Positions 2,404-64,000 are shown, counted from the first letter of the stretch. The stretch is DNA of 64,000 nt from Podarcis muralis (GCF_964188315.1 NC_135656.1:107012001-107076000), one strand, 5' to 3'. Translations and numbers: made by a program. The notes: generated by a model not told the origin, from the letters alone.

Positions 2404-13450
<11,047 letters not shown>

Positions 13451-16391: not shown

Positions 16392-16712
16392 TAGTGGATT
16401 CATAGGACATCAAAAAAAGCCACCCTCTGTCTCTTGGTTCCAGACTGTCATCCCCAGCTCACATGGTGTTCTCTGCAAGGATCAATCAATGTTGAACCTG
16501 GCTTTGTCTATACCCACTAGCCCCTATCAAGGAAGAGGGCCCACTCCCCTTCCCTGGCACTCTTGTCCTCTGATGGTTTCCTTGATGGGCCATCACTGGT
16601 CTTTGTCCCCTGCTAATGGCCCATCCATCCAGCTCTGCAGATGTGGCTTGGCTCATTAGAATAATTAAATCCAGGCGATTTCAGTATGTGGCAAAGTTTA
16701 ATCAAACCTTGT

Positions 16713-30287: not shown

Positions 30288-30971
<684 letters not shown>

Positions 30972-33644: not shown

Positions 33645-34121
33645 TCACTGGACCGCAACGGGCGCGGTGCTGGGCTTGAGGGGCGCCTTGGTGCCTTTGG
33701 CGGCCTTGGTGACGGGCTTGGGCGCGGCCTTGGCGGCAGCCGCGCTGTGCAAAGCTTCGGTCTTCTTGGGCAGCAAGACGGCGTGGATGTTGGGCAGGAC
33801 TCCACCCTGCGCAATGGTCACACCGCCCAGCAACTTGTTCAGCTCCTCATCGTTGCGCACCGCCAGCTGCAAGTGGCGCGGGATGATGCGGCTCTTCTTG
33901 TTGTCCCTGGCTGCGTTGCCGGCCAGCTCCAGGATCTCGGCGCTGAGGTACTCGAGCACCGCGGCCAAGTAAACGGGCGCTCCGCCGCCGATGCGCTCGG
34001 CGTAGTTTCCCTTGCGCAGGAGCCGATGGACTCTGCCCACGGGAAACTGCAGCCCGGCTCTGGAAGAGCGGGACTTGGCCTTGGCTCGTGCCTTCCCGTC
34101 TGTCTTGCCACGACCTGACAT
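33645..34121 (-). CDS. H2A: Histone H2A long-tail variant, copy 2 (158 aa, G8D)
   Basis: Same protein as copy 1 except [10 protein letters not shown]; several synonymous differences. Confidence 0.93.
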
Positions 34122-37100: not shown

Positions 37101-37227
37101 TTTTCTATTGGCTTGTTCATCTTCGACCAATCACAGCCAGCTCAAGAAACGTATAAAAGGCGCCCACTCCAAAACACCTGCAGTCTTTTCGTTATTTCGT
37201 CGAGAAAGAAGTCAGGAGCCTTTGAAG

Positions 37228-37704
37228 ATGTCAGGTCGCGGCAAGACAGGCGGGAAGGCACGAGCCAAGGCCAAGTCCCGCTCTTCCAGAGCCGGGCTGC
37301 AGTTTCCCGTGGGCAGAGTCCATCGACTGCTGCGTAAGGGAAACTACGCCGAGCGCATCGGCGGCGGAGCGCCCGTTTACTTGGCCGCGGTGCTCGAGTA
37401 CCTCAGCGCCGAGATCCTGGAGCTGGCCGGCAACGCAGCCAGGGACAACAAGAAGAGTCGGATCGTCCCGCGCCACTTGCAGTTGGCTGTGCGCAACGAT
37501 GAGGAGTTGAATAAGTTGCTGGGCGGTGTGACCATCGCGCAGGGCGGAGTCCTGCCCAACATCCACGCCGTCTTGCTGCCCAAGAAGACCGAAGCTCTGC
37601 ATAGCGCGGTCGCCGCCAAGGCCGCGGCCAAACCCGTCACCAAGGCCGCCAAAGGGACCAAAATGGCCCTCAAGGCCAGCACCGCGCCCGTTGCAGTTCA
37701 GTAA
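37228..37704 (+). CDS. H2A: Histone H2A long-tail variant, copy 3 (158 aa)
   Basis: Core differs by I80V; tail [36 protein letters not shown]; CCAAT/TATAAAA promoter upstream. Confidence 0.95.
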
Positions 37705-40540: not shown

Positions 40541-41106
40541 GCAGATAAGAAAGTGAAGTTTATGTGTCTGAATTAGCTCCTCCACAGGCAAAAAACTCAA
40601 CAGGTATGGCTTTCCCATCTCTGCATTACCATTTTGAAAAACAGCACCTTCTGTACAATGGTTTTCAGCTGAAACCCAGATGAAAAGATAACCAAATGCA
40701 GCAACCCTATCTAGGTGTCAGCATAGCTTAGTCTGCCTCAAGTCCCCCCCCAGTTTCATGGCTAAGTGGGGATTTGAACCCTGGTCTCCCAGGCCCTAGG
40801 CCAGCACTCTAACCACTATACCACACTGGCCCTCTGCCTTTTCCCCTTCCCATATTTTCTATACATCCATTTCAGCTTTCCCCTCTTCACCCCCCCTTTC
40901 ATTAATGATCATAAGGGGTGCTACTTTTAAGGGAGATGTGGGACAGATGTTATTTTACCTCGATGGGATTTCAGTGCGGGGAGAGGAATAGATGGTCTGC
41001 CCCTTAGTTCCAGACACCTGGGGGTCCCCAAAGGAATGGAGCCTTGGGCAACGAGAGCTCACAACTTTGAGTACATTTTAATAAGGATAACTCTAAACAT
41101 TTATAC

Positions 41107-41663
41107 AGCAGCCACGAAATTAAAAGATGCCTGCTTCTTGGGAGAAAAGCAATGACAAACCTAGACAGCATCTTAAAAAGAGACATCACCTTGCCAACAA
41201 AGGTCCGTATACTTAAAGCTATGGTTTTCCCAGTAGTGATGTATGGAAGTGAGAGCTGGACCATCAAGAAGGCTGATCGCCAAAGAATTGATGCTTTTGA
41301 ATTACCGCGCTGGAGGAGACACTTGAGAGTCCCATGGACTGCAAGAAGATCCAACCTCTCCATTCTGAAGGAAATCAGCCCTGAGTGCTCACTGGAAGGA
41401 CAGATCCTGAAGCTGAGGCTCCAGTACTTTGGCCACCTCATGAGAAGAGAAGACTCCCTGGAAAAGACCCTGATGTTGGGAAAGATGGAGGGCACAAAGA
41501 GAAGGGGACAACAGAGGATGAGATGGTTGGACAGTGTTCTCGAAGCTACAAGCATGAATCTGACCAAACTGCGGGAGGCAGTGGAAGACAGGAGTGCCTG
41601 GCGTGCTCTGGTCCATGGGGTCACGAAGAGGCAGACACGAATAAATGACTAAACAACAACAAA
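41107..41663 (+). mobile_element. Bov-B LINE 3' fragment
   Basis: MTNLDSILK..YGSESWTIKKAD..FGHLMRR..; (aac)n tail. Confidence 0.92.
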
Positions 41664-45252: not shown

Positions 45253-45535
45253 TTATTTATTTATTATTTATTTATTGAATTTATATACCATCCTACACCC
45301 GGAGGTCTCACAGCAAAGATCACAATACTTAAAATCAAAATAAAAACAATGACCCAATAACACCTGCCCAAAAAAGAGCCGCATTTTAAAAGGGTATAGG
45401 ATGTTGATCAGTTCAACAAAAGGAACAATTCTGGCTGCTGCCTAAAAGTGTATAATGAAGGCGCCAGGCGAACTTCCCTGGGGAGAGCATTCCACAGGCG
45501 AGGAGTCACTGCAGAGAAGGCCCCGTTCTTTCCAA
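45253..45535 (-). mobile_element. L2-like 3' fragment directly downstream of the transposase stop
   Basis: RLWNALPREVRLAPSL..F remnant; (aaat)n tail carrying minus-strand AATAAA at 45256-45261 and 45271-45276. Confidence 0.7.
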
Positions 45536-45574
45536 GACCAGCCATGAGGATTCCTTTAGGGGAAAGCAACAGAT

Positions 45575-48500
45575 TCAGTCCGACTTCCCCCACTCTCTCC
45601 TTTCCATGTACGTGCTCAAAAGATCCCTGATCTCCCGCGCTCGGGGGTTGGCCGCGTACACCAGCTGCCTCTCCGGCTGCTGGTAAGACCGCGAGACGGA
45701 CCTCACCACTTCCTGCCAGCCTTCCTGGAGAGGCTCGCCTCTGGTCTCGCAAATGTTGTGCAGGATGCAGCAGGCCACGATGACCCGGGGGGCGTAGCGC
45801 TCCCTCACGTCCAGGCGGGAGAGCAGGCACCGCCAGCGGCCCCGGAGGCGCTCGAAGGCGGACTCTGCCACCGCGTGGCAGCGGCCAAGGGCGTCGTTGA
45901 ACCGCTGCTGGCGGGCGTCCAAGTGCCCGCCATACGGAGTCATCAGCCAGGCCAGCAGCGGGTAAGCGGGGTCTCCAAGGATCACCGGCTTCAACTGCTC
46001 GCCTCCCACGTCCACGGTCACGCTGGGACCAAAGGTGCCTTGGTTCATGGCACGGAAGATGGGCGAGCCGCGGAAAATCCGGGCTCCGGGAAGCTTCCCG
46101 GAGCGCCCCGCGTAGACGTCCGTGAACCTGCCTCTGTGGTCCACCAGTACTTGCAGGACCATGGAGTAGTAGCCTTTGCTGTTGATGTACTCGGTGGCTC
46201 TGTGTGCCGGGGCAATGATAGGGATGTGGGTGGCGTCGAGGACTCCGATGCAGTGGGGGAAGCCCTTGGCAGCGAAGCCTTCCATCACCTCCTGGGCACC
46301 GGCCAGGTGGACCACGTGGTGGTAGACGTCGTAGAGCGCTTGGCAGACTTCCATGACGATCCTGGAGACCGTGGAGCGGCCCACCCCAAAGCACTCGGCC
46401 ACCGAGCGATAGCTATCCGGGGTGGCCAGCTTCCAGACGGCGATGGCCAGCTGCTTCTCGACGGTGATCGGAGCGCGCATGTTGGTGGTCTGCCGCTCGA
46501 GGACGGGCCTGAGCCGGTCGCACAGCTCCATGAAGGTCCTCCGGCTCATGCGGAAGTTCTCCTGCCAGAGTTGGTCGTCCCAGTGGGGCAGAACCACCTT
46601 CTCCCACCATTCGGAGCGGCCCGGCTGCACCCAGAAGGCCCTCTCCATGATGTAGAGTTCGTCGATCAGGCCGGCCAGGACGGCCGGCGACTGGAAGAGG
46701 CACGAGCACATCATGGCCTTCAGAGAGTCGATGCTCGATTCCACCACCGCCCGGAGGCGCACCGATGCAGCCGTCTCCACCATCTCCTCCAGCTCGGCCA
46801 GGTCGTCGCGCCCTCGCGGCAGAAGCTTCCGGCGTGTCGCCAGCCGCGCAAAGATGCGCGACTGGATCCCCGCGACGGTTGTGATGGCGGCCACGGCAGC
46901 TGTGGCGGCGGCGAGAGCAGCTGATGCCGTCTGATCGCCTTCTGGAGAAAATGAAAGACAAGAGAGGTCGTTTCAGGAACACCAGGAAGGAGCTGCTTTG
47001 TACCAGGGCAGATTCTGGTGATGGAGCCCCATATCTGATAGGCAATGGGTCTCAGGAGCCTCAGCAGGGAAAAGCCTTTTGAACAGCCTTTTGAATGTGT
47101 TTGTGGGAGGCAGGGGGCCCACTATTGTTTCCTTCTTTTTGATTTCACTATTTATTTGTGCTTTTACTTTGTATTTCATCTATGAACCACCCAGAGATCT
47201 TGTGACCACGGGCGGTATATAAATCTAACAAATAAAATATGAATAAATAAACGTGGGTGACTCTAAACGAGGATCGAACAAATTCATGGAGGACAAAGGC
47301 TATCCAATGGCTATTAGCCACGATGCCTGTGCTCTATCTCCACGATTGGAGGCAACAAGGCTTCTTAAGAATAAGAATTTTATTAATTATACCCCACCCA
47401 TCCGGCTGGATTTCCCCAGCCACTCTGGGCAGAATATTAAAAACATGATCAAAAATTAAAAACTTCCCTAAACAGGGTTACCTTCAGATGTCTTCTAAAA
47501 GTCAGGCAGTTGTTTATTTCCTTGACATCTGATGGGAGGGCATTCCACAAGGCGGGTGCCACCACCGAGAAGGCCCTCTGCCTGGTTCCCTGTAACCACA
47601 CTTCTCGCAGTGAGGGAACTGCCAGAAGGCCCTTGGAGCTGGACCTCAGTGTCCGGGCTGAGCGACGGGAGCAAGGCCAATTGCTAGGAACCACAGGAGG
47701 GAAAAGGGCTCTTGCGTTCGGATCCTGCTTGCGTATTTCCCACTGGCATCTGGCTGGCCACTGTGAGAACAGGATGATGGAATAGATGGGCCACTGGCCT
47801 GATCCAGCAGGCTATTCTTAAGTTCTTACTTTGGGGTGCGTCCACCAACAGTTAAAGTCCCATCTATCTACCATGAGTTTCCCCGGACAACTAGTGTTGG
47901 GTCTGAATGTTTGCCGATTAGGATTTGGCCTTTTTTTGGATTCCGCAAGGCTTCTTTTTTAAAAAATAAAATAAAAATAAAACAATGCAAAACAATGTTG
48001 TTATTGCTGCAAAGGAAAGGGCACATAGAATTTGCAAAAAATATATATAATTTGTTCAGGTTCCTATTATTCCTTAGGCAAATACCTGTTTGTTTCGGTT
48101 CAGCTTATTCTGTTGCTGCGAGTCCTGGGGGGGAAAGCATGTGGGCACAAGGGGCATTGAGGTGACCAACACCTGCTGCATATATTTAAAGGAAGAAGTG
48201 GGACTGGCCTGTGGAGGCCGTGAGACCAAATATTTGAATGCTTCCTCCTGTACAAGGAGAATTTCCACGTTTGAAACTTGCAGTCATGGAAAAGGCCAGG
48301 CTACTTCTGTAGGTCCAGGATTTTGTTGTTGTTGTTGTTTTACATTGAATAGGATAGAATTTTTTAAAAAGAGAGATTTCCTGCTTGTAGCTGGAATTCT
48401 TTTGTGTTTTGCCAGCCGTTGAGAGTAAAAGCCGACTGTGACATGTTGGTTTAATCTCTCAAAAGCTGAAAACATCCCAGAGTTTGCACTGCAGGAGTTT

Positions 48501-49313
48501 GCACAAGCTGGGGCCCGACTGGAATGTCCTTGGAAGCCTGAGAAAGAAGTAGAAGCTGCCTTGTTTATCAGTTTCGCATCCACACCCTTCACAGCAGCCC
48601 CTGAAGGCTCTTCCTGGTCACAGACCCGCATTCTCAAATCTAACAAACTAAAAAAACAAAAAACTCTACTGTCTTTTAATTCTATGAACATGTACCTAAG
48701 CATGCATCTTTTAAGTCTCTCAATAGCTTTGCAAGAGTTACAAATATAGACAAAAATGCTAGCTTATTCTCCTACTTTGTGAAATGAGAAACTTATCGTG
48801 GGCCAGAGGATAGCCAGTTTGGATATACAGTCGTACCTTGGTTGACAAACGCCTTGTGAGTCAAACGTTTTGGCTCCCAAATGCCGCAAACCCGGAAGTG
48901 ATTGTTCCGGTTTGTGAATGTTCTTTGGAACCCAAACGTCCGATGGGGCTTCTGATTGGCTGCAGGAGCTTCCTGCAGCCAATCAGAAGCCGCACCTTGG
49001 TTTTCGAACGTTTTGGAAGTCAAATGGACTTCGGAAGGGATTCTGTTTGACTTCAGAAGGCAGCCTCTTAGGCGCACCAGACAGAAGGGACCCTAAGGCC
49101 AGCAACACATTCACCTTTTACATGATGAAATCAAACTTTTGACTTACACGGTTTCCACTGAAATACTCTTCTGTTTTGTTTTTCTGTCCGAGTCCTTACC
49201 TGAGCTGCTATTCCTTGGCATCTCCTCTGTCTTAGGGTCCTGGGGGTCCAGGTTCGATGTTTCTTCTTCTCTCTCCATCCTCAACCTCACCTTAGGCTTT
49301 AAGAAAGGAAAAC
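45575..49313 (-). CDS. KRAB-B-like exon spliced to a PIF/Harbinger DDE transposase exon (at least 493 aa; 5' exon unresolved)
   Basis: Exon 49313-49200 (114 nt, GFPFLKPKVRLRMEREEE..LDPQ, tag| and |gtaagg, phase 1/1) and exon 46941-45575 (tttctccag|, phase 1, no stop or frameshift). Harbinger motifs NFRM, WKLAT, LDATH, GDPAYP, AESAF, CCILHN. The transposase homology is firm; the splice join is predicted. Confidence 0.85.
47375..47665 (-). mobile_element. L2-like LINE 3' fragment
   Basis: FSVVAPALWNALPSDVKEINNCLTFRRHLKVTLFREVF. Confidence 0.8.
48284..48639 (-). pseudogene. Degenerate KRAB-ZNF terminal exon (linker plus broken C2H2 motifs)
   Basis: Acceptor tttgttag|, phase 1, DLRMRVCDQEEPSG..; contains C..C..F-x5-L-x2-H and SQRLAKHKRIP; a TGEKPF-like nucleotide echo near 48235-48255. 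Confidence 0.5.
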
Positions 49314-49821
49314 CTAATCAGGAAAGAGAAGCCAGAACAAAGGCAAAGGGGCTGGCAGATTCCAACAAGGCCTGTGGCTCCTACTGCAGCAAAATGCTGC
49401 ATTTACAAGATGAGAAGCGCCAAAGATTATAATCATCCAAGCATGTGCAGAGCAGAGTAGGTTCTGGAGCAGATTTTCGTAGGATCATGGAGTTGGAAGG
49501 GACCTCAAACGTAATCCAGTTGGTGGAGCATCAGACTCTTAATCTCAGGGTCGTGCAAACAAATCCTGCATTGCAGGGGGCTGGACTAGATAACTCGTGT
49601 GGTCTCTTTCCAACTCTACCATTCTAATGCAGGAATTACAGCTTGGTTTCCTGGTAGAGCTGGAAAAGCTCCAGAAAAACGCAGCCAAAATCGTCAAGAG
49701 GCTGGAGACACTCATATACTTGTATGACAATACTAAGCAGGGGCAATGTCTGACATCCTTGGGCATCAGGGAGGATCCACCCAGCGCTCTGAACAGTGCC
49801 AGGCATTGTGGCTTATCCACC

Positions 49822-50220
49822 ATTTTATTTTTATTTTTTAATTATTTTTATCATCAATTTCAACATAACAAATTATCAAACCATATAATCACATACATTA
49901 TTTTCCCCCTCCCTTCCCTCCCCCACCAAAGACTTCCCTCAGCTCCTCTCTCTGATTTCTCAGCACATATTATTCTCTGCATGTTATAAAATTGTACATA
50001 TCCTTATATTATCTATCTAACATGTTATCAACCAAAAAATTTGTGTATGTTTATTCAAAACCTGCCAAGGAGTCCAGTTCATTTTGTTGTCTTTTTAAAT
50101 AATTTGTAAAAAGCTCCCATTTTTCCTTAAAGTCACAGTTGTCCTTGTCCCGCAATTTATATGTTAATTTAGCCAACTCTGCATAACTGATCAATTTTTG
50201 GCTTATCCGCCATTTTAATG
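49822..50220 (-). mobile_element. L1 3' fragment
   Basis: KLISYAELAKLT..KWELF ORF2 C-terminus and A-rich tail. Confidence 0.8.
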
Positions 50221-50464
50221 CCCACCAGACCCCCACAGCAACACCACATCCCCATCCGTCCTGTACATTGAAAGCAGTACCATTCTGCTCAAAAAAATGT
50301 CATGGCTTCCCCCAAATAATTCTGGGAAATGTAGTTCGTTAAAGGTGCTGAGGGTCGTTATATGTCTCTGACTACCACTCGCTGGGAACTGCAGCGGGGC
50401 AGAGTACCGTTGTGCTCATGTCCTGCTAGCAAACCTCCCCACAGGCCATGGGGCGAACAGGATA

Positions 50465-50676
50465 CAGTGGTACCTCAGGTTAAGAACTTAATTCATTCCA
50501 GAGGTCCATTCTTAAACTGAAGCACCACTTTAGCTAATGGGGCCTCCCGCTGCCACTGTGCTGCCGCCGCCGCGCGATTTCTGTTCTCATCCTGAAGCAA
50601 AGTTCTTAACCCAAGGTAATATTTCTGGGTTAGCGGAGTCTGTAACCTGAAGCGTATGTAACCTGAGGTACCACTG
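50465..50676. mobile_element. Tigger-like MITE
   Basis: TA|cagtggtacctcaggtta..taacctgaggtaccactg|TA; inverted relative to 9708-9933. Confidence 0.88.
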
Positions 50677-51929
50677 TACTGGTCTGGATGGGCCATTGGC
50701 CTAGTGAGGCAAGTAGGAGATCCCTATTCCACCCGCAGAGCTACCAGAGTTCCCAGGGGTTAAATAACACTGTTCCCAGTTCCCAGCATTCTTTGGGGGG
50801 AAGCAATGGCCTTTAAAGTGGCATGACGCTGGTTTAATGGTATAGTGCAGAAGATGTCTGTGTTGGACCCACTTCCAGGAAATTGTGCAGGCCGCTGCCG
50901 ACTTAAATTAGTGACCCTTAAACAAGCTTCCTAGGAAGTGAGTCTTGCTTGGCACTTGCTCCAAAGGAAACGTGCGCAGGATTGGGTTGGGATTGGGGAA
51001 GGTGGCCATTGCTCTGTGGTGGAGGTGGTCTTAGGTTTAATCCCAGGCACCTCAGGATTTCAGGAAGCTAGCCTGAGAAGGCTTAGGACAGCCCCCCCCC
51101 CCAAACTCGGCCCTCCAGATGTTTTGGGACTACAACTCCCACCATCCCTAGCTAACAGGACCAGTGGTCAGGGATGATGGGAACTGTAGTCCCAAAACAT
51201 CTGGAGGGCCGAGTTTGGGGGTGCCTGGCTTAGGAACTGCCTATGGCAGGGATGGGGCGGGTGGATAGCTGGGGGCAACATCGCCCACCACCCCTGGTCA
51301 CTAGCTACATTGCCTGTGGCTGATGGGACCTGGAGTCCCACAGTGCCAGGAGAGCCACAGGTCTTCCTTTCCTGACTTGGGAGACTCGCCATTGGCTGGA
51401 GCTGCACACAGTGCATGGCTAAATCAGAGGCAGTCAGTCTTCAGGTTTGTCTGATATCCTATTTAGTTTTACCTAGAAGACTCAAGATTTTCCAACCAGG
51501 GCCAGATGCAAAAGGCATACCTCCAGGGTGCGGTTTTCCCAAATGCGGGTTTCTATTTTTTTGGACTACAACCCCCATCATCCTTAGCTGGCAGGAACCA
51601 GGGGTAAGGGATGATGGGAACTGTAGTCCAGAAACAGCAGCAGACCCAAGTTTGGGAAGCCTTGCTCTAGGGCAGGGACAGCCTGTGCGGTGATTTCTTA
51701 ATACTTCAAACTACGACTCCCAGAAGCCCCAGTCTGCACTGCCAAAGGTCAGGGAGGATGTGAGCTATAATCCAAAACCACTTAAGGGCGCCGGTGCAGT
51801 TACCTTGTGTTTCTGAGCAGCAATAATTTATTTCCAGGGCCAGAAATGAATTGAGCCGGAGCTGAATTTCACGCGGAAGTCTATTCCTGATTAGGGATTC
51901 CCCCCCCCCCCCCATTTCAGGAATTTATG

Positions 51930-52500
51930 TTTAGGTGGAGAACATCATTTCTTCACTGCTGATGGGACGACCGAGCGCAGGAAGCCCTTGCCGATCTACT
52001 GCAAACCATCCAGATCTCAGCAGATCTCCAGCCACCTCCCGCCTACCGGATTCCCACTTGATCCAGCCTGGTCGGCGTCTTCCTTACACCATCCTCCCGT
52101 TTGCATTTAGAGAGGCGCCAGGCTCCTTTATCGCAAGCTGCGGACCACAGGAATCATCTTTCTTGGTCGCTCCATCTGGGGGATCTCAGATTCTCCCCCA
52201 GGATCGGATCGGCTCTCCGGGCAAAGTTGGGTTTCTAAACTCCGCCCCGCACGATTCCCCCGCCTTGTGAGCAGCAGAGCAGACTGGAATCTACTGGGAC
52301 CCCCCACTTCCTGGAGGTCTCGCGGATTCTGCAAATACACGCAGGAAACGCGCGTGCAGCGTGCAAGAAGAGACACGAATCCAGGATCGGCAGCAAACCC
52401 TCCTCCGACAGCCACGGGACCGAGGAGATCCTCTTCCTGTGGCGACTGCGCCCGAAGATCTCTTACGTGTCAGCTCCCCTCAGGGTCCTAAAGCCTACCT
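51930..52500 (-). promoter_or_regulatory. CpG-rich candidate promoter and first exon for the KRAB-transposase gene
   Basis: GC box aactccgccccgcac at about 52238-52252 (same 15-mer as at about 662); minus-strand donor GGT|GTAAGG at 52088/52087. Confidence 0.45.
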
Positions 52501-52714
52501 GCTCCCAGGAGTTGTGATTCTGGGTCGGCTTCTTAACCAAGACTGTGCCTGCGATGCAGTTCTTGCTTCAATTAGGCATCATGACTGTGCCCTGGCACCA
52601 GGGGTGGCCCCGCCATTGTGGGTGCCCGAGGCCGTGGGTGCCATGCAGCATGCATGACCCTGGCACTGAAATTTGTGGGTGCCTGGGCACCCAGTTAGCC
52701 GGCACCTATGACCA

Positions 52715-53052
52715 GGAGATGGTGGCGCTGTGGGTTAAACCAGAGAGCCTAAGACTTGCCGATCAGAAGGTCGGCGGTTCAAATCCTCGCAACGGGGTGA
52801 GCTCCCGTTACTTGGTCCCAGCTCCTGCCAATCTAGCAGTTCGAAAGCACGTCAAAGTGCAAGTAGATAAATAGGTACCGCTTGGGCGGGAAGGTAAACG
52901 GCGTTTCCGTGTGCTGCTCTGGTTCGCCAGAAGCGGCTTAGTCATGCTGGCCACATGACCCGGAAGCTGTACGCCGGCTCCCTCGGCCAATAAAGCGAGA
53001 TGAGCACCGCAACCCCAGAGTCAGTCATGACTGGACCTAATGGTCAGGGCTC
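52715..53052 (+). mobile_element. Sauria SINE
   Basis: Near full-length match to the copy at 25088. Confidence 0.9.
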
Positions 53053-53896
53053 CCTTCATGCAGTTCCTCCAGACCCCGGGATTGCCATGGGTGCAGGGCA
53101 CACAGGGTGATCAACTTGGTCAAGAATCAGCCTGCTCTGCTCAGACAGGTCAGGCATCAACAGAGGGGGGGGTGACCGCTGGAAGGAGCCCATGGGGCAT
53201 CTCCAGCGGCACAACTGGATACCTTCATCTGCCCCACCTGCAACAAAACAGGTCTCTCCTACATCAGTTTCTACAGCCACAGCAGGCGCTGTGACTCTCC
53301 AGCAGTTTGACTTTACCCCCCCGCCCCCAGGTACACTCTTCCATAGAATCATAAAATTGTAGGGATGGAAGACAACCGGAGGGTAATCTAACCCAACCCC
53401 CTGCAATGCTGGATCAATGCTGGTACAGTGGTACCTTGGAAGCCGAACGGAGTCTCGATTTCCAAAACGTTCAAAAACCAAGGCGCTGCTTCCGATTGGC
53501 TGCAGGAAGTTGCAGAAGTCGCATCGGATGTTCGGGTTCCGAAGAACCTTCACAAACCGGAACACTCACTTCCGGGTTTGCAGCGTTTGGGAGCCAAAAC
53601 GTTTGACTTGCCAAGCAACACATGATACTCACGAGTGGCTTTCAACTGGCTGCAGCAGTCAGATCATAACAGATGATAAATGTTTAGCTCTGAGACGAAT
53701 TCTCCCACCTATCATCCCATCACTGTCTCATGGGAGACGAATTCTCCCCTACCTGTAGCCTTTGGGATGTTACTGGACTTCAACCCCACCCACCTTAGGG
53801 ATGATGGGTCTTGCAGTGGCATGTTCACCTGGCAGCCGTGGGGGATGTGAAGCTTTGTGTCTGAATTTCCAGTACAGAAATGCTTCTGCAGAAATA

Positions 53897-54400
53897 CCGT
53901 ATTTTTCGCCCCATAGGGTGCACCGGCCCATAGGGCACACTTATTTTTTTATGGGGGAAATAAAGGGGGGGATTATTATTTTTCCCCCGAGCCCCAAAAA
54001 GCAAAGAAGCCATGACAGCAAGCAGGACGGATCCTGCTAGCTGTCCTGGCTTCGTTTTTAGCCTCGGGGCTGGGGGTCCGGAAGCGAAGGCGAGGTTGCG
54101 CAACCCGGAGCTTGCTCCCGGAGCTTGCCGGCCTGGGGCGGGGGAAGCCCGAGCTTCCCCCGACCCCATCCCCCAGAACAGGCTGCTATCCGCAAGCCTA
54201 GGGAGCCTGGCGGGAACTCCCGCCGGGCTCTCCAGGCTTGCGAATATCTGCCCGAAGCCCGGGGCGCCCCCCGCTGCGCCCCCCGGGTTTCGGGCTGCAG
54301 GCTGCTTCCTGAAAGCCTGCATTCGCCCCATAGGATGCACACACACTTCCCCTTCATTTTTGGAGGGGAAAAAGTGCGTCCTATAGGGCGAAAAATACGG
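53897..54400. mobile_element. Tc2/pogo-like MITE
   Basis: TIR ccgtatttttcgcc / ggcgaaaaatacgg; TA TSD; GC-rich hairpin interior. Confidence 0.85.
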
Positions 54401-54739
54401 TACTTAGAAATGATACCAAGGAAGGAGGGCAGGGATGTTATGGTCTGCATGGTTCATAGGAGCCCCCCCCCCCCCCCCCCGTGTGGAGGCTGTTTGTTAT
54501 AATGTGTCTAGGTAGGAACAGCTGGTTCTTGCATCCCAGAAAACAAAAGATGCTCCAGGCCATTCTCAAAGAAGAGGCGGGTGTGTCAACAAGAGCCCTC
54601 TTCACGCAAACAGACCCAGCCAGGCAGACCCGTCTGACAAGGTCTCTTCACCTCCGCCACCTCCAAACCCTTTTGCAAAGGACAAATCTACCACTTCTCT
54701 GACATAGCACCACCCATAACCAGAAGCTTGCAGAAAGGC

Positions 54740-54994
54740 CATGGGTAGGCAAGCTAAGGCCCGGGGGCAGGATCCAGCCCAATCGCCTTCTAAATCTAGC
54801 CCACGGACGGTCCAGGAATCAGCGTGTTTTTACATGAGTAGAATGTGTCCTTTTATTTAAAATGCATCTCTGGATTATTTGTGGGGCATAGGGATTCATT
54901 CTCTCCCCCCCCCCAAAAAAAATATAGTCCGCCCCCCTACAAGATCTGAGGGACAGTGGGCCGGCCCCTTGCTGAAAAAGTTTGCTGACCCCTG
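54740..54994 (-). mobile_element. hAT MITE
   Basis: 8-bp TSD agaaaggc (54732-54739, 54995-55002). Confidence 0.9.
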
Positions 54995-55319
54995 AGAAAG
55001 GCCATCTCAGAACCTGTTTTCCTGCCTTGTCCATCCTTTTTCTCGTCCACAGCAACCTTGCTCAACCCTGCCTCCCAGTGTCTTCTTCTCTCCCCCCCCC
55101 CAGTTCTAACACCGCCACCCCTCTTTTCAACACACACATATGTGGAGTTTTCTTCCAGCCGAATCCATTCTTCATTTCCTTCCCTTGTCAACAGTATGTA
55201 ACTATCACTTCCACTTCTGCACTTAGAATACTCGACAACATTCCATGATGTTGCAGCAGCTTAGCCAATGGCTGGGGGTTATTTCAAACGCCAGCATATT
55301 CTTTTAACCTATCCTAGCA

Positions 55320-55810
55320 AGTCATTCTCCAGCATGGGGCTTACAACTTCCTGCGTATGGATCCCACAGTAGAAGCGGCATAGAGGAACCATACATTGAA
55401 GATATGGCCTGTAGGTTTATATATGTTGGCTCCCACCCACTCAGACAGATTGTGGGAGGGGACTGTTTTGTCCCTGCTTTATTCTGTATTTTGTGTTCAC
55501 TAAGAGGTGCATCTGAGATCCTTTGCGATGTCACAGAAGACGCTGCCACCAACTTTTCCCTATCCATGGACTCCAGGCCATCGGTCATTGTAAAAATGTG
55601 CCTGGAGGCAGACATGTCGTGTAGAGAGAAGATGCGCCATGGTGCACCGGCAACAGCACAACCAGACGCCTTCATATGCCCCAGTTGCAACAAAACATGT
55701 CTCTCCTGTATCGGCCTCTACAGCCACAGCAGGCGCTGTGACTCTCCAACAGTTCACCCCAAAAGGCACACTTCTCCATTGTCTTCTGAGACAGACAGAT
55801 GCCAACAAAA
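55320..55810 (+). mobile_element. RTE-clade LINE 3' fragment
   Basis: C-terminal zinc motif FICPSCNKTCLSCIGLYSHSRRC; shorter relative at about 53200-53340. Confidence 0.75.
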
Positions 55811-55841
55811 ACCTTCACCCTAAGGTCCCAGATATGTGACA

Positions 55842-55842
<1 letters not shown>

Positions 55843-55886
<44 letters not shown>

Positions 55887-55910
55887 GTGTGTGTGTGTGT
55901 GTTTGTGTGT
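55843..55910. repeat. (ATCT)n(TG)n microsatellite
   Basis: Direct reading. Confidence 0.95.
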
Positions 55911-56241
55911 ATACATATAGAGAAATAAGATGGCACAAAATGGTTTTGTGTTGAGTGGCACGTGAGTTTCTGTGCTACAACATTTTTCTCACACCCCTTA
56001 TTTACCAGAACTAGTAATGTGGGGAAAGAAAGGGGAGGGGGGGGAAGAACCCCACCCCCAACTTTTTTCCCACCCAACCCCGCCTTCCTAATTACACAAC
56101 TAGCCAGCCAAAATCATTAATTGCAAAAAGGTTTTTTGAATTCCTGAAAAAGAAAACTACAACCCGTTACAAACGCAGCCCGGATGTCCCGCACGCTAGC
56201 GGAACTACAGCCAAAGAGCGTCGCCACAGCCGTCTCGGGAG

Positions 56242-57360
56242 TCACCTCCGGTACCTCGCCCTCGCCATGGACCGCCTGGTGGACCCCAAGCGCAAGGGAG
56301 AAGTGTCTGCCGCGTGACCGGGCTGCCCAAGCCGGGGTAAACGGGCCTGCCGGGTTAAGGCCGGGGCCGGGGGAGCCTGTGCCTCTGCCTGCTTCCGCAC
56401 GAGTGACTCTAGCAGTTCTGTCTGGCGGTTCATGAGCGCAATGATCTGTTCAGTGTCCACGCGGTCCCGCTCCCGCTCCTCCAGATCGGCCTTCGTGTAC
56501 TCGCCCAGGGCCGCCAGGATCCGGTCGGTGGCCGCCTGCACCCTTCTGTCAGCTGCGTGGGTGATTTCCAGCGCCAGATCCTGCCTGTTTTTCCTCTTCC
56601 GCTTCCGGATGTTGGCGAGGCGCTCTGCGGCGTACGACCTGGCGGGGTCAGGCAAGGGACTTGGGGAGGGGGTTATGGCCCCGTCTGAAAAGCAGGAAAC
56701 AAAATTATGCTTAGAACTCACTTCCTCAACAGCAAGTCCCATCCAACAAAGTGGGACTTTCCGAATCAACATGATTCGGATTTTCAGCGTTAACTTTAAG
56801 AAGCAGTGCATGAGTTTGCTTTTCCCCCTCCTCCTCCTATTTTCCTTTTGTGTTGTGTCATTTTTGGGTGTAGCTTGATTTTTTAAAAAATTGATCTGTA
56901 AGCTCTCTCTACCAGTTGGTTCAACTGAGCCACAGTGCGAAGGAAAGACAAACGAGTTGGCTCCTATCCATCCCTTGCGAGTCGACTTGTTGGTACCTAC
57001 CTGTCTGGTTGCTTGTGGCAAGAAAGAAAAATGTATTCTGGTAACCCAACAGGGAAGAGCTATGCTTTGGCTTGTGGGCTAGAAATGACTAACATAGTTT
57101 TGTGTAGGATAGCAAGCTCCTGCAGGTGACCATGGGCGAGTGACCTTTGCAGACCAACTTGCAAGGCTGTTCCCTCGAACAGCATCCCTGTTGACACGAG
57201 ACAAGCGCTCGCTATCTGTACTTTCTGGAAACGAATGACATTTCTGGAAACACTGAAGACGAATTTGTTTCGAGACAATTCTCCACCTGGAAGAAACGGC
57301 CTTAGGTTGAACAATACAAAACGCAAACGTCAACTTGGTTTTTGGTGCTGCTTTTCAAAG

Positions 57361-57398
<38 letters not shown>

Positions 57399-60381
57399 CC
57401 ACTCCTTCTGTGGCCTGCCTGCCAATTGCCTTGAGACAGTATGTAAAAAGTGATTCATAAATTAATAAGGCTACCTATTAACATAACTCCACCTATTAGA
57501 AAGAATTATTCCTTGCCACAGGCGAGCATCTAATTTACATCCAGTCATTCAACCTCATGAATTGGCAATTCTTATCTGCTTGTTTTGTTCTGTTCTTACC
57601 TACTGTTGAGGCAGAGCTGCCGGGTTTATCGCAGGGAGGAGACAGCAGAGGTGGAGCTGGACTGCTGGCTTCTGCTGTTCCTGAAGACAGACAGAACATT
57701 GATTAATTTCAGGAGCATAGCTGGCCTTCGTCCACAGCAACAGCCCTAGCCCCCCTCTGCTTCTGGTCTATCGTATCAAAAACCACAACGTATGCATATT
57801 GTTGTGCAGAATGGGCTGAGGAAATGCTTGGGGGCAGATGTGTGAATGCAGAATGCCTAAGAATGAAATGATCATCATATACAAAACACACCGCAATCCC
57901 TTGGGCATTAACCCAGCCATTGCATTTTGATTATCGAGTTCAAGAACATAGCAGTCTTGTCTTCAAGCACTAGGCTGGCAGCTAAAGACAACCAAGGACC
58001 TTATGAAGGACCGGTTGAAGGAGATGGGTATGTTTATCCTGGAAGAGAGGAGACAGGATATCCATCTTCAAATATCTCAAGGGCTGCCGCGTGGAGGATG
58101 GAGCAAGCTTGTTTTGCTCCCGCTTTCATAGAATAGAATCATAGAGTTGGAAGAGACCACAAGGGCCATCGAGTCCAACCCCCTGCCAAGCAGGAAACGC
58201 CATCAGAGCACTCCTGACATATGGTTGTCAAGCCTCTGCTTAAAGACCTCCAAAGAAGGAGACTCCACCACACTCCTTGGCAGCAAATTCCACTGTCGAA
58301 CAGCTCTTACTGTCAGGAAGTTCTTTCTAATGTTTAGGCGGAATCTTCTTTCTTGTAGTTTGGATCCATTGCTCCGTGTCCGCTTCTCTGGAGCAGCAGA
58401 AAACAACCTTTCTCCCTCCTCTATATGACATCCTTTTATATATTTGAACATGGCTATCATATCACCCCTTAACCTCCTCTTCTCCAGGCTAAACATGCCC
58501 AGCTCCCTTAGCCGTTCCTCATAAGGCATCGTTTCCAGGCCTTTGACCATTTTGGTTGCCCTCCTCTGGACACGTTTTAGAGGGTAGGACCAAAACCAAT
58601 GATTCAAGTTACAAGAAAGGAGATTCTGACTAAACATCCCATAACTAAATAAGGTAAAAAGGACCCCTGGACAGTTAAGTCCATTCAAAGGCAATTATGG
58701 GGTTGTGGCGCTCATCTCGCTTTCAGGCCGAGGGAGCCGGCGTTTCTCCACAGACAGCATTCTGGGTCATGTGGCCAGCAGGACTAAACCGCTTCTGGTG
58801 CAATGAAACACCGTGACGGAAGCCAGAGCGCATGGAAACGCTGTTTACCTTCCTGCTGCAGTGGTACCTATTTATCTACTTGCACTGGCGTGCTTTCGAA
58901 CTGCTAGGTTGGCAGGAGCTGGGACAGAGCAATGGGAGCTAACCCCGTCGTGGGGATTCAAACCGTCAACCTTCTGATCAGCAAGCCCAAGAGGCTCAGT
59001 GGTTTAGACCACAGCACCACCCGCGTCCTTTTATAACTAAATAACTGCATGAGAGGAAGGACATGCGCCGATGCAAGAGGACTTGCTCCCTCTCGCCTCC
59101 TGCAGAGCATGTGCTTCATGCTCTCCCCAAATCTGCTCTGGAGGCTCGGAGGCAACCCCAGAACAGATTTAGGGAGCACACTGTGGGGGTGGGAAGTCTC
59201 ACTGCGCAAGCGGAAGTAGCTCTGCTCTTGCAAGGTTTTATCGCTACTTTGGATATGACTCACTGTCTGTAACGCTGTAGGTATTACGGAGCCATTGTGG
59301 CTGGTAGTCACTGGTGTCTTTTTTAATCCTCCGCGAATTTCTCCAGTGAACCCGTCTAAGCTGGCCGGCTGTCACTACATCTCATGGTAAAAGGTAAAGG
59401 ACCCCTGGATGGTTAAGTCCAGTCAAAGGCGACTATGGGGTTGAGGCGCTCATCTCGCTTTCAGGCCGAGGGAGCCAGCATTTGTCCGTGCCGATAGCTT
59501 TCCAGGTCATGTGGCCAGCATGACTAAACCGCTTTTGGCGCAACAGGGCACCATGATGGAAGCCAGAGCGCACGGAAACGCCGTTTACCTTCCTGCCACC
59601 GTGGTACCTATTTATCTACTCGCACTGGTGTGCTTTTGAACTGCTAGGTTGGCAGCAGCTGGGACGGAGCAACGGGAGCTCACCCCATCGCAGGGATTCA
59701 AACCACCAACCTTCTGATCGGCAAGCCCAAGAGGCTCAGTGGTTTAGACCACAGCGCCACCCGTGTCCCTGTACATCTCATGGTAGCTAACGTGCACCAC
59801 CAGCAACACACTGGCCAAGCAGCAGTGCATTATGGGAGAGGGATGAAAGCCAAGGGGCATACCGACACAAAATCATCCTCTTGGATCTACATACTTATAA
59901 CGACTGCAGCAAAGGAGAGGAGGATATATACACACACACCCTACTTTTCTTCAAAGAGCTCCAGGCAGCACATGGTTGCCACCCCACCTCTCAATTTTAT
60001 CTTCGCAAAAACCTCGTGAGCTTCCTGGGGATTCGAACCCTGCCGTCTCCCATCACAACATGCCTTCCTAACCACTACCCAACAGTGGTTCTCTGGAGTC
60101 CTGCGGCATGTTGTAGACCAAGTTATTCCACTTTTTTCGCAGGCTTTGGTCTGCTTAACTAGATGTACGCTGCAAAAGCAGCAATTATGCCACGGTAAAT
60201 GGATTTAGCCTTCCAAACGCCACAGTAGCTTTGACCTTTCACAGCAACAGTGGGTCATTTTTAATTTACCCTTATGGTGCAAAAGTGCTGGGGTGAGGAG
60301 AGACTTTCTGTTCCTCATCAGGTAATAGCTTTTCCATCTGCCTGGCCCCAACCAGCCCTTCCCAGACTATGACTTTGAGAA

Positions 60382-60424
<43 letters not shown>

Positions 60425-63400
60425 TGGGAAGAGAGGAGTTCAGGGATATTTTTTAAAAACAGTTTTATAAGTTGTGCTTCTTAGTTTCTCAATTTGATCC
60501 TTTAACGTGGTTTTTGTATGTTTTGCGGTATTTTGCTGTTACTTTTATTGATTGTAGATTGGTAATTCTTTATTGTGGGTGAACTGTTTAATTACTATTT
60601 GCTGATGTTTAATTTTACTGTTTTACTGTTAGATTCTGATGGATTGCTGAACGTTGCTTTGTCATTGCGACTTTTATATTGGATCAGATTGCTACTATTA
60701 ATGTTTGATGCTTTATTGTGTTTTCATGTCTTGGAAGCCGCCTGGAGTGGCTTGGGCAACCCAGCCAGTGGGCAGGTTATAAATGAATTATTATTATTAT
60801 TATTAGGCAGTTAGCCACGCTCGCAGAATCACAGAACTGGAGAGTTAGGATTCCTGAACAATGAGACCTGGCAGACCAGGCCGTGCTTTTTTTTCTGGGG
60901 GTACTCAAGGGTAAAGCTAAAGGACCCTTGGGTGGTTAAGTCAAGTCAAAGGCGACTATGGGGTTGTGGCACTCATCTCGTTTTCAGGCCAAGGTCCACA
61001 GACAGCTTTCCAGGTCATGTGGCGAGCAAGACTAAACTGCTTCTGGCACAATGGAACACCTTGACGGAAACCAGAGCGAACGGAAACTCCGTTTACCTTC
61101 CTGCTGCAGCAGTACCTATTTATCTACTTGCACTGGTGTGCTTTCGAACTGCTAGGTTGGCAGGAGCTGGGACAGAGTAACGGGAGCTCACCCCGTCACA
61201 GGGATTTGAAACCCCAATCTTCTGATTGGCAAGTCCAAGAGGCTCAGCAGTTTAGACCACAGCGCCGTACTGGCACTCTTTTTTCCTAGACAAAAAGAAC
61301 TGACTAAAAGTGTGGCATTTACTGCAACGACTTCATGGTGAGAACTGGCACTTTTTTTCCCTACAAGAAAAGCATGGAGACCCGGGTTCAAATCCCCTCT
61401 GCCACGAAGCTCAATGACCTTGACCTTGGACTACTCACAGGCTCTCAGCCTAACCTACCTCGCAGGGTTGTTGTGGGGGATTAAATGAGGACAACCATGT
61501 ACGCTACCTTGGCCTCCTTGGAAGCAAAGGCGGAATCTAAATGCACGAAAATAAAACAAAAGACACTGTCCCCCAGGGATTCCTTTCTTTTTTAAAGGCT
61601 ATTTCGAAAACCTCATTCCACAGGACTCTCCTCAGACACCAAATGCCGCCACTGACCCGTGGGAGACGTCACAGGCATTTCGTCGGGGGCTTCCTCCTTT
61701 ATGTATGGTACGGGGAAGCCGCCCCCCAGGCTGGGGACCTGGGGGGGCAACCGCGTCCTTAGAGCCAACGTCTCCTGGCTGCCCGCTCTAGCCCCCTCCG
61801 CCGCAGCTTCCTCCTCGGTGGAGCACTGAGACATCGAGTCGGCGACAGACGCCCCGCGGCGGCTCAAGGCGGGCAGCACCTCCGGGGGCGGGACATCCGC
61901 CTCGTTGGCCAATAGGTGATCGAGCTGGTCGTAGAAGAGCCAGGCCAAATGTCCTTTCCCCGGGGAGTTGTTGGCCTTGGCTATCCTGTAGTCCCTCTTC
62001 AGAGTCTTGATTTTGGAGCGGCACTCCAGGGCAGAGCGCTTATGGCCTCTCTGTGCCATCTTGCCGGCCACCACTTGGAAAGTCTCGATGTTCCGGTGAC
62101 TCCGCTGCAGCTCCTGCTGGATCTCCCGCTCGCGCCAAATGACCAGCAGGTCTATGATCTCGGGGTAGGTCCACGTGGTGCCGCGATACTGCCTGTAGGG
62201 GGCAATGGCTGGCTCGGGCGTTTCGGCAGCTGGAAAGCCAAGTGGGAGAGAGGTGAAGCCAGGTGGGAGGGAGGTGAAGCCAAGTGGGAGGGAGGTGAAA
62301 AGAGAGAGAAAGGTTAAATCAGACAGAACAGGGTGGGGAGAAAAGAGCTGACAATATTTAATTATCTTTTTTTGCGTGTGTGTCCTGAAGCATCACAATT
62401 ACAAGAATTTTTAAACTCTTGAAACAGAGGGGGGTATCAACAAAAATAAGGACTGCACTAGATCTGACACTAAGAAACGAGAAGGTTTTCAGCATTCCTC
62501 AAGTGGACTCTGCTGTACAGCCAGGCTTGAGGCACACAATGCACAAAATCCCCTGGGATAGCTCAGTCGGGAGAGCATGAGACTGTTAATCTCAGGGTCG
62601 TAGGTTTGAGCCCCACATTGGGCAAGAGATTCATGCATTGCATGGGGTTGGACTAGATGACCCTTGTGGTTCCTTCAAAATCCATAATTCTTTGATTCTT
62701 CTTTGATGCTTTGAATGAGGAGGGTGCATCTTTCTCAGTGCTGAGTGAGCACAACCTGCTCACTCAAACTCTGGGCAGACAGAGGGAGAATAGACTTCCT
62801 TGCAATGAGGTTGAGGGAACGGTAAAAGAGCATTGGGAAATAATTCAAAATGAATTGGGGAAAAAAAGTTTTAAAGTACTTTTAAAAAACAACAACCAGA
62901 GTCCTTTTTGTTGGGGAAAATTCAGACGGAAATTCCCAGGTGTCAAAAAAGTTTAGTAATGTTTGCCACTATTGTGTTTCGTTAACCCAAAAGTGCAAAT
63001 TGAGCAAAGTCCCAACTAAAGAAGAATGACAACTTAAACTGATGGAATATGTGCAGCTTGCAGACCTAACATAAGAGAGCAAGGAGGACATACATTTAAA
63101 GATTGGAAAATGTGTACACTTGAAAACGTTGGCAGCATTAAGATAAATTCAACCGTGTAAACAAGTTTTGGTGGATGTACTAATGGAATACTGAATGGTT
63201 TAGTTAATGTAAAATATGCAGGGATTTATGATATGCAAAATGAACTATGGAAAGAGAAGAAGGGAAGCCACTGACATTTTAAGGTTGCGTAAATTAGTAT
63301 TCTAAATTGTAAAACAGAAAGTTTAATAAAAACTATAAAGGTAAAGGTAAAGGTACCCCTGCCCGTTCGGGCCAGTCTTGCCAGACTCTAGGGTTGTGTG

Positions 63401-63896
63401 CTCATCTCATTCTATAGGCCAGGAGCCAGCGCTGTCCGCAGACACTTCCGGGTCACGTGGCCAGCGTGACAAGCTGCATCTGGCGAGCCAGCGCAGCACA
63501 CGGAACGCCGTTTACCTTCCCGCTGGTAAGCGGTCCCTATTTATCTACTTGCACCCGGGGTGCTTTCGAACTGCTAGGTGGGCAGGCGCTGGGACCGAAT
63601 GACGGGAGCACACCCCGCCGCGGGGATTCGAACTGCCGACCATGCGATCGGCAAGTCCTAGGCACTGAGGTTTTACCCACAGCGCCACCCGCGTCCCTAA
63701 TAATAAAAACTATAGAGAGAGAGAATAGACTTCCTGGTTAGAAGGCACGCGCTAGCCCTTCCAGGTGGAGTTGGCCCCTCACCTAAGTTGCTTCCAGGCA
63801 GGATCCGCCTCCCTCTCGCGACTTGCTCGCTTGGGATCCACTGCTCTTCCTCAGACTCAATCTTGCAGATCAGCTCTGGCTCGTCAGCAGGCAACC
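56242..63896 (-). CDS. KRAB-B-like exon spliced to a Harbinger-type Myb/SANT-like DNA-binding protein (at least 403 aa; 5' end beyond the window)
   Basis: Exons 63896-63783 (114 nt, [22 protein letters not shown]), 62229-61657 ([31 protein letters not shown]), 57680-57600 (81 nt), 56684-56242 ([13 protein letters not shown], coiled coil, TGA). All junctions phase 1, GT-AG and in frame. Confidence 0.85.
58127..58575 (-). mobile_element. CR1 LINE 3' fragment
   Basis: [34 protein letters not shown] and attctatg tail. Confidence 0.92.
58653..59028 (-). mobile_element. Sauria SINE (older subfamily)
   Basis: TSD ataactaaataa. Confidence 0.88.
59390..59770 (-). mobile_element. Sauria SINE
   Basis: TSD tacatctcatggta. 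Confidence 0.9.
60385..60423. repeat. (CAG)13 microsatellite, intronic
   Basis: Direct reading. Confidence 0.95.
60909..61266 (-). mobile_element. Sauria SINE nested in a small DNA-transposon remnant
   Basis: Diagnostic body and head sequence. Confidence 0.8.
62551..62699 (+). mobile_element. tRNA-Lys-head / CR1-tail SINE
   Basis: tagctcagtcgg.agagcatgagact.ttaatctcagggtcgt followed by ggttggactagatgacc..; partial relative at about 49520-49620. Confidence 0.8.
63000..63337 (+). mobile_element. L1 3' fragment
   Basis: [21 protein letters not shown]2 remnant and aataaaa end. Confidence 0.65.
63338..63697 (-). mobile_element. Sauria SINE
   Basis: TSD taataaaaactata. Confidence 0.92.
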
Positions 63897-64000
63897 CTGC
63901 GCAGGAAGGAGCAGAAGAGCAGCAAGGCCCAGGTCAGTTGGCCATTCCACCCATCATTGGCTAGGGAGATGTTCTCCATTGCTTCACCCCAGTCCACAAC

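Follow-up and report, generated by a model that had tools for sequence, protein, structure and literature searches.

A probable squamate-wide pair of domesticated PIF/Harbinger genes with vestigial KRAB leaders

Introduction

HARBI1/NAIF1 is reportedly a vertebrate pair formed by a domesticated Harbinger transposase and a Myb-like partner protein (Kapitonov & Jurka 2004; Sinzelle et al. 2008). This pair has been summarised, and adjacent co-domesticated PIF pairs are described from Drosophila, Anopheles and Lepidoptera, namely DPLG7-DPM7, APLG1/2-APM1/2 and LPLG2-LPM2 (PMC9710019). In reptiles, Harbinger transposases fused to host domains are described as KHARBID1-4 (KRAB-Harbinger) and HARBID-G2 (SCAN-Harbinger), and a dN/dS of 0.08 is given for KHARBID1 (Cosby et al., bioRxiv 10.1101/2020.05.07.082677, supplementary file 6). 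Here we describe two neighbouring genes of Podarcis muralis, LOC114588424 (the Myb gene) and LOC114588406 (the transposase gene), which are located on the minus strand of a stretch of 64,000 nucleotides (GCF_964188315.1 NC_135656.1:107012001-107076000). This whole stretch is called the window, and all positions are counted from its first letter. The two genes probably constitute a squamate-wide domesticated PIF/Harbinger pair with vestigial KRAB leaders.

The locus combines features of several described systems. As in HARBI1/NAIF1, a protein derived from DDE_Tnp_4 is accompanied by a Myb/SANT/trihelix-type partner with a stretch resembling a nuclear localisation signal (NLS), and the genes are single-copy and under purifying selection. 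Unlike HARBI1/NAIF1, the lizard pair is a squamate-only and independent domestication, whose clade stands apart from turtle transposable elements (TEs) and from a HARBI1-like protein of Sceloporus (44% identity); in addition, the squamate genes are adjacent, both have KRAB-derived leaders, and the catalytic glutamate is not retained in all lineages. With the insect PIF pairs the locus shares a transposase and a DNA-binding partner that have been kept adjacent (for 28-140 million years, My, in the insects), no terminal inverted repeats (TIRs) and low dN/dS (PMC9710019). However, the insect partners are MADF proteins and those pairs look like one TE insertion, whereas the lizard partner belongs to Myb_DNA-bind_4, each lizard gene has its own KRAB-derived exons, the genes lie ~7 kb apart, and their orientation differs from that of the closest TE family.

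The likeness to KHARBID1-4 consists of host KRAB exons spliced to a Harbinger transposase open reading frame (ORF) in squamates, together with low dN/dS. Unlike the lizard pair, which lost KRAB-A, KHARBID1-4 and HARBID-G2 retain a Pfam-detectable KRAB or SCAN domain, and no partner Myb is reported for them. The identifiers of the pair (110069952, 103278031, 110091183 and 103278030) are absent from the supplement of Cosby et al., where 110070590, 103280956 and 110091519 are listed, and this fits a screen requiring a detectable host domain. Since no Pfam KRAB is left in it, the pair escapes domain-based screens for host-transposase fusions. In plants, both Harbinger proteins were likewise co-opted as ALP1/ALP2 and HDP1/HDP2, with catalytic residues lost or eroded (PMC4671723, PMC7282668, PMC5339849). 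The plant proteins belong to a chromatin complex, are of independent origin, are not adjacent and have no KRAB history. For the lizard pair, a chromatin role is putative.

Myb-like genes derived from Harbinger partner ORFs are also known as the MSANTD1-4/NAIF1 family, which dates from the base of vertebrates (PMC9392472, a paper without mention of reptiles or KRAB), whereas the lizard Myb gene has matches in squamates only. The NCBI label 'MSANTD7' carried by two lizard Myb orthologs is based on similarity, human MSANTD7 being an alias at the HSPA14 locus, and our searches do not suggest orthology between the two. Similarity is also the basis on which NCBI names several squamate transposase orthologs 'ALP1-like'.

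An earlier note on this DNA, made from the sequence alone, knew of no comparable described case. Our literature search found no paper on this lizard pair, but KHARBID1-4 and the adjacent insect PIF pairs had been published, which makes the case less isolated than the note supposed. What is new here is the combination of co-domestication with KRAB capture, followed by early loss of the repressor-recruiting half of KRAB. The locus is therefore a natural setting for testing whether a gene, at its birth, needs captured host domains only for a time, as a source of promoter, splice sites and start codon.

Gene structure and expression

As the earlier note had anticipated, the two genes are arranged in tandem and their six exons join in frame (Table 1). 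All six are open with one frame offset (phase-1), a pyrimidine tract plus AG precedes each, and GT follows directly after every exon that has a downstream intron. When joined, the exons give one continuous ORF per gene, 402 aa long in the Myb gene and 492 aa long in the transposase gene, in agreement with RefSeq. The Myb model aligns end to end with the RefSeq ortholog of Zootoca vivipara (378/402), while the transposase model and residues 39-530 of XP_028569512.2 (LOC114588406 isoform X1) show 100% identity, and the RefSeq isoforms agree with our model of the transposase-gene transcript.

Searches with Pfam placed Myb_DNA-bind_4 on 61657-62227 (E 4e-17) and DDE_Tnp_4 on 45575-46939 (E 6e-31, full profile 1-158/158), with a weak match to HTH_Tnp_4; no Pfam family was found on either 114-nt exon, on the 81-nt exon or on the last Myb exon. 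In our own reading, the last Myb exon would encode a coiled coil and an NLS. The 81-nt exon shows 71-96% identity in Pogona, Heteronotia and Zootoca, and one Podarcis muralis isoform of the Myb gene is formed without this exon and without the KRAB-type exon.

The large transposase exon was described in the earlier note as having no ATG at its N-terminal boundary, where a pyrimidine tract and AG are found instead. This is indeed so: there is no ATG near the 5' boundary, and the first in-frame methionine is residue 53. The ancestral transposase start K-M-A-S-A-A can still be seen inside this exon in most squamates, but Podarcis has Q-T-A-S in its place, and a full-length Podarcis product must therefore start in an upstream exon. 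Among the upstream exons used by RefSeq, the first coding exon of isoform X2 shows no conservation beyond lacertids, and that of isoform X1 has no counterpart at the other squamate loci compared.

Four RNA runs were placed on 58000-63999, the side of the Myb gene. The junction 63783>62229 proposed in the earlier note is carried exactly by contigs from two runs of different studies, and RNA contigs span 61656-62231 in two runs. The Myb exon and the KRAB-type exon are covered at a depth of 10-25x on a single strand, and unique intron sequence at ~0-2x. In two further runs, 31 raw reads join 63783 to 62226. These two raw-read runs are labelled as the same species. Within 61657-62229 they depart from the reference at ~17 fixed positions, and their acceptor lies 3 nt deeper in the exon; a divergent Podarcis lineage is their probable source. 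Because they differ from the reference at many exon positions, the shift of 3 nt may belong to another lineage. A longer form of the Myb exon was also observed, in one RNA contig (depth 23, compared with 59 for the exon) and in 4 raw reads: it reaches 592 nt further upstream (62230-62821), with a junction 62821>63781 near the donor of the KRAB-B exon. This form would correspond to an alternative acceptor and would place stops between the KRAB-B and Myb parts. For the transposase gene, ~0.3 of the words sampled from 45400-49400 occur in RNA runs, about the proportion that is exonic.

Orthology, synteny and selection

The earlier note spoke of a lizard-lineage regulator; the pair proved to be squamate-wide and is not confined to one lizard lineage. 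The transposase protein has one ortholog per species, with 82-86% identity, in ~15 squamates, including Varanus, two geckos, Thamnophis, Pogona, Phrynocephalus, Anolis, Sceloporus, Elgaria, Hemicordylus, Rhineura and other lacertids. Its next relatives are multicopy turtle sequences at ~50%. The Myb protein gave 19 ortholog matches in 18 lizard species, five geckos among them, with 66-80% identity and in squamates only. In a maximum-likelihood tree, all squamate transposase genes fall in one clade (100/98) apart from the multicopy turtle elements, and the subclades within it follow taxonomy, with lacertids, anguimorphs, geckos and the two iguanian groups each coming out as such.

The order Myb > transposase > H2A, with H2A on the opposite strand, is found in the three distant species Pogona, Heteronotia and Varanus, and it is the same in the window. 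In Anolis, Elgaria, Zootoca and Heteronotia, moreover, the LOC numbers of the two genes are neighbouring ones. These data suggest that the pair has been adjacent since before the geckos split from the other squamates, ~200 My ago. No match turned up in tuatara, and domestication may thus date from the squamate stem, or the tuatara may have lost the gene.

Both genes evolve under purifying selection, as estimated by pairwise NG86. For the transposase exon, dN/dS is 0.03-0.10 with dS of 0.75-2.0. Within the Myb gene, dN/dS is 0.01-0.04 for the Myb domain, 0.17-0.34 for the linker and 0.07-0.14 for the last exon, and deep comparisons give 0.10-0.20 for the KRAB-B exon. Both checks proposed in the earlier note, on syntenic order and on dN/dS, thus came out in favour of host genes, with values of 0.01-0.20 over the Myb domain, C-terminal exon, KRAB-B exon and transposase exon.

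Harbinger ancestry and transposon status

The elements of Chrysemys and Natator that contain the closest TE transposases also hold a two-exon Myb-like gene. By BLASTP, exon 1 of this turtle gene matches the lizard Myb exon (E 3e-20), and exon 2 matches the last lizard exon (E 5e-9), where the similarity takes in both the basic R/K stretch and the helical region. The earlier proposal that both genes derive from the two Harbinger proteins and were domesticated is therefore borne out by this homology, together with synteny, single orthologs per species and low dN/dS. Other squamate genes with Myb_DNA-bind_4 were seen, among them Podarcis muralis LOC144326090, and some of these paralogs lie on the same Podarcis chromosome. 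Another squamate family with this domain, at least one in number and likewise single-copy, shares the C-terminal coiled-coil exon, with 42-44% identity over 85% of the length.

No TIRs flank either gene, in accordance with the earlier note, and the inverted repeats present in 44-64 kb are opposed SINE (short interspersed element) copies or AT-rich low complexity. A pair of inverted segments around the transposase exon (45253-45289 / 47214-47250) was considered as a candidate TIR and dismissed, being AT-rich low complexity at 84%. The transposase protein matches include a single Podarcis cluster, with the next relatives at <=53% identity, no second copy of any exon is present in the 64-kb window, and no remnants of the other TE ORF were found beside each gene. 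The introns have received insertions while the exons stayed open, again as first noticed: they hold SINE copies and, in an intron of the Myb gene, the tail of a long interspersed element (LINE) at 58203-58694, which we take to be CR1-like. Between the two genes, 51098-51221 contains a hairpin of the type seen in miniature inverted-repeat transposable elements, with 52-nt arms that are 94% complementary and 20 nt apart.

Remnants of the KRAB domain

The 114-nt exons were both called KRAB-B-like in the earlier note. This holds for the exon of the Myb gene, which matches ZNF568 and ZNF93 in profile searches, but neither exon scores with Pfam KRAB and the case of the transposase-gene exon is weak.

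Of 17 full-length Myb-gene orthologs taken from RefSeq or Logan in genera other than Podarcis, 16 start at the methionine inside the old VMLENY motif. These 16 proteins begin with MQNN(Y/F)..VALLG; the remaining one, a Phrynosoma model, is annotated with another start. A profile of the 16 squamate N-termini (48 residues) matches the KRAB of ZNF568 (E 2.4e-5) and of ZNF93 (E 0.008), in the register MLENYSNLV..G....KPD.I..LE..EEPW, that is, the last 12 residues of the A-box and the whole B-box. As judged from this profile, the 114-nt exon of the Myb gene is a KRAB-B exon. Upstream of the start methionine, the remainder of KRAB-A is recognisable in the DNA but has decayed. In Pogona it reads VVVDFSREALWA, followed by a stop and a frameshift; in Heteronotia, VGFSREPCWA is followed by a stop at the same place as in Pogona; in Zootoca, LDQNQRAL is retained in another frame. 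These readings cover the three species named, and the Podarcis relic exon, with the start codon, lies beyond the end of the window. Since a gecko and an agamid share the stop, the loss of KRAB-A predates the squamate radiation.

The retained M-L-E position of the Myb protein reads M-Q-N. According to work on KRAB and TRIM28 (Margolin et al. 1994 and later studies, including the ZNF93 complex 7Z36), the A-box is reportedly required for TRIM28 binding and the B-box alone is insufficient. It is therefore unlikely that either protein acts as a repressor of the TRIM28 type, given that the A-box binds TRIM28 and that M-L-E has become M-Q-N.

The 114-nt exon of the transposase gene has the same length and phase as its counterpart in the Myb gene, and the same acceptor is present in Thamnophis, Pogona and Heteronotia, where the Heteronotia version reads FPNSKPKVISNMERGEE. 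The motif MER(E/G/K)EE inside this exon is the annotated start in ~15 species, its start codon is conserved in all squamates compared, and Varanus has a stop between the acceptor and this methionine. In hhalign, the exon met the Myb-gene KRAB profile in the expected register with P 7e-4 and a probability of 26%, and a shuffle test against ZNF568/ZNF93 segments gave p 0.0002-0.04 in 3/4 species. PDB searches with a profile and with the single gecko sequence returned no KRAB match. The exon would thus be at most a B-box relic, a weakly supported one. Its reading as a KRAB-A relic, suggested by the stretch EE.WNLDPQ, was rejected, as the register FP.SKP.VIS.(L/M)E.GEE.W fits the B-box better. No A-box relic was detectable <=3.5 kb upstream of this exon in five species, and regex and tblastn scans gave no KRAB-A or SCAN exon in the window.

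With Pfam KRAB, neither 114-nt exon scores at E<=1, and none of the squamate orthologs matches PF01352 at E<=10, whereas E 1e-24 is obtained with a turtle KRAB-Harbinger model. The missing Pfam KRAB is weak evidence, since PF01352 models the A-box. A gene model of Emydura macquarii was seen to have a full KRAB-A box (E 1e-24) joined directly to a Harbinger transposase of the multicopy family, and it may show what the ancestral squamate fusion looked like.

Catalytic state of the transposase

The D-D-E triad is present in Podarcis; the assignment of its columns as catalytic follows published PIF/Harbinger motifs, and is presumed here. Both aspartates (IDATH and ILGD) are retained in all squamates aligned. 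In the motif VVE.AF.RL.GRW, the glutamate is kept by lacertids, geckos, Varanus, Elgaria, Hemicordylus, Rhineura and Sceloporus; Anolis and Pogona have D at this position, and Thamnophis and Phrynocephalus have G. Since several lineages have thus substituted the catalytic glutamate, catalysis is probably dispensable. In all four lacertids, V-H-D has changed to L-P-G by point changes in three adjacent codons (starting at 46091-46093), and V-H-D is kept in every other aligned sequence, the crinoid one included. This change in an otherwise strongly constrained protein suggests that catalysis may not be what selection preserves.

Table 1. Exons of the two genes and presumed catalytic residues of the transposase in the window
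Feature	Position	Strand	Basis
Myb gene, 114-nt exon with conserved KRAB-B box and linker	63783..63896	-	AG/GT flanks, open frame, RNA junction
Myb gene, exon with Myb/SANT-like (trihelix-type) DNA-binding domain and acidic linker	61657..62229	-	Pfam, BLASTP, RNA
Myb gene, 81-nt alternative exon, Ser/Pro-rich	57600..57680	-	AG/GT flanks; present in Zootoca model
Myb gene, last exon with basic NLS-like IRKRKRKNR and predicted coiled coil; TGA stop 56242-56244	56242..56684	-	Open frame
Transposase gene, alternative first coding exon, RefSeq isoform X2	52047..52106	-	tblastn, first 20 residues, 100% identity
Transposase gene, alternative first coding exon, RefSeq isoform X1	51802..51915	-	tblastn, first 38 residues, 100% identity
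Transposase gene, 114-nt exon, probable KRAB-B relic; start ATG 49276-49278 (M-E-R-E-E-E)	49200..49313	-	AG/GT flanks
Transposase gene, large single exon with whole Harbinger transposase (helix-turn-helix, HTH, and DDE_Tnp_4); stop 45575-45577	45575..46941	-	
Presumed catalytic residues (isoform X3 numbering): D262; D350; E386	46235-46237; 45971-45973; 45863-45865	-	

Discussion

Our findings are best read, and in our judgement probably correctly so, as a squamate-wide domesticated PIF/Harbinger pair with vestigial KRAB leaders, in which both genes were assembled by splicing host KRAB exons to transposon ORFs and would encode a complex like HARBI1/NAIF1 or ALP1/ALP2 that probably acts without catalysis or TRIM28. 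We hypothesize that KRAB exons of a host gene were spliced onto each transposon ORF, giving rise to both genes, and that the KRAB-A box then decayed in the squamate ancestor, so that the remainder of KRAB would persist as a leader supplying promoter, splice sites and start codon. The Myb gene still translates a 12-residue tail of the A-box together with an intact and selected B-box, and the transposase gene only the second half of its B-box-like exon. If Harbinger3_DR, HARBI1/NAIF1 and plant ALP1/ALP2 are taken as models, the Myb-like protein most likely binds DNA through its trihelix-type domain; it also has an NLS-like stretch and would bind, import or tether the transposase-derived protein. 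The resulting complex would act on chromatin or DNA without TRIM28, with catalysis being probably dispensable. Our data establish the gene structures, transcription of the Myb gene, orthology, synteny, purifying selection, descent of both genes from Harbinger and the loss of KRAB-A, while protein interaction, DNA binding, independence of TRIM28 and a non-catalytic role are inferred.

The possibility that both proteins carry a working KRAB and form a heterodimeric repressor that recruits TRIM28 would agree with the exons of KRAB ancestry that begin both genes, and with a Myb-gene KRAB-B exon that is spliced in, translated and under purifying selection. It is nevertheless highly improbable, since the proteins have no KRAB-A and no Pfam KRAB match, the A-box relic carries stops and frameshifts in Pogona, Heteronotia and Zootoca, translation starts at the VMLENY methionine with the L and E of M-L-E now being Q and N, the first half of the B-box relic of the transposase gene is untranslated and has a stop in Varanus, and TRIM28 binding, by established knowledge, needs the A-box, the B-box alone being insufficient. 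The earlier idea that both partners are KRAB-fused is thus retained as to the ancestry of their first exons and given up as to function, KRAB-A being decayed or untranslated. Even harder to sustain is the notion of a dormant or recently active Harbinger transposon in place of host genes: the D-D-E triad is intact in Podarcis and the transposase ORF runs uninterrupted for 1.37 kb, but there is one Podarcis cluster with next relatives at <=53%, there are no TIRs, orthologs occupy the syntenic place in four distant families, dS is saturated with dN < 0.1, and the ORF is spliced to upstream exons. We give this notion almost no credence.

A more serious competitor holds that two unrelated domestications are mere neighbours with no functional tie, the Myb gene having come from the expanded squamate Myb_DNA-bind_4 family. 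Several paralogs of this family exist in squamates, some of them on the same Podarcis chromosome, snakes seem to retain the transposase gene without a Myb neighbour, and the TE ORFs are convergent where the genes are tandem. We still consider it unlikely, because adjacency and order have been held in Gekkota, Iguania, Anguimorpha and Lacertidae for ~200 My, both genes share the odd build of a 114-nt phase-1 KRAB-B-type exon placed before a transposon ORF, and the Myb protein retains the two-exon architecture of the Harbinger partner protein. In addition, PIF/Harbinger pairs are as a rule co-domesticated (PMC9710019).

Several observations weigh against a co-domesticated pair with KRAB leaders, in whole or in part. 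The two ORFs converge tail to tail in each of the turtle elements, whereas the squamate genes are tandem, so that one plain insertion fails to explain the locus, and two captures in opposite orientation, or a rearrangement, would be needed. The squamate Myb_DNA-bind_4 paralogs (44-58%) are closer to the Myb gene than is the turtle TE protein (32%), and hence an older host paralog, and not the same insertion, might be the source of the Myb gene. No snake is among the Myb protein matches, and the 10 kb upstream of the Thamnophis elegans transposase gene contain no trace of Myb. As no snake Myb ortholog was seen, the transposase-derived gene may work without a Myb partner. The KRAB-B identity of the transposase-gene exon, as read from its sequence, is statistically weak. 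Interaction of the Myb and transposase-derived proteins is proposed by analogy only, and nuclease activity may be possible in Podarcis, geckos, Varanus and others where D-D-E is intact. Concerning snakes, it was also observed that the Myb partner is possibly lost and that the Thamnophis transposase has G for the catalytic E. Contrasts for probing the role of the transposase-derived protein are provided by the varying catalytic glutamate and by the snakes, where Myb appears to have been lost.

A more specific history of the proposed pair is possible, although we hold it with considerable doubt: both Harbinger proteins may have been captured separately by KRAB exons, the A-box discarded more than ~190 My ago, and the pair kept linked with selection on the Myb B-box. 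If this were true, KRAB exons would be a disposable scaffold for the birth of genes, the B-box would have a function independent of the A-box, and squamates would possess a nuclease-optional chromatin complex parallel to plant ALP1/ALP2.

Neighbouring genes and repeats

The window also contains three H2A genes, nearly identical to one another and with long C-terminal tails rich in Ala, Lys and Pro, at 30369-30971 (+), 33645-34127 (-) and 37108-37704 (+). In Pogona, Heteronotia and Varanus, too, an H2A gene on the opposite strand follows the transposase gene downstream, and H2A is hence part of the conserved block. Two tandem TRIM-type genes on the plus strand have RING/B-box first exons at 2404-2883 and 18345-18851 and B30.2/SPRY last exons at 12761-13450 and 26086-26658, and the region looks like a histone/TRIM cluster. 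The translations of 16613-17210, 19095-19568 and 41004-41652 contain the motif RMRWLDSV...LREAVEDR.AW.ALVHGVTK, which we take to be the C-terminus of reverse transcriptases of BovB/RTE-type LINEs.

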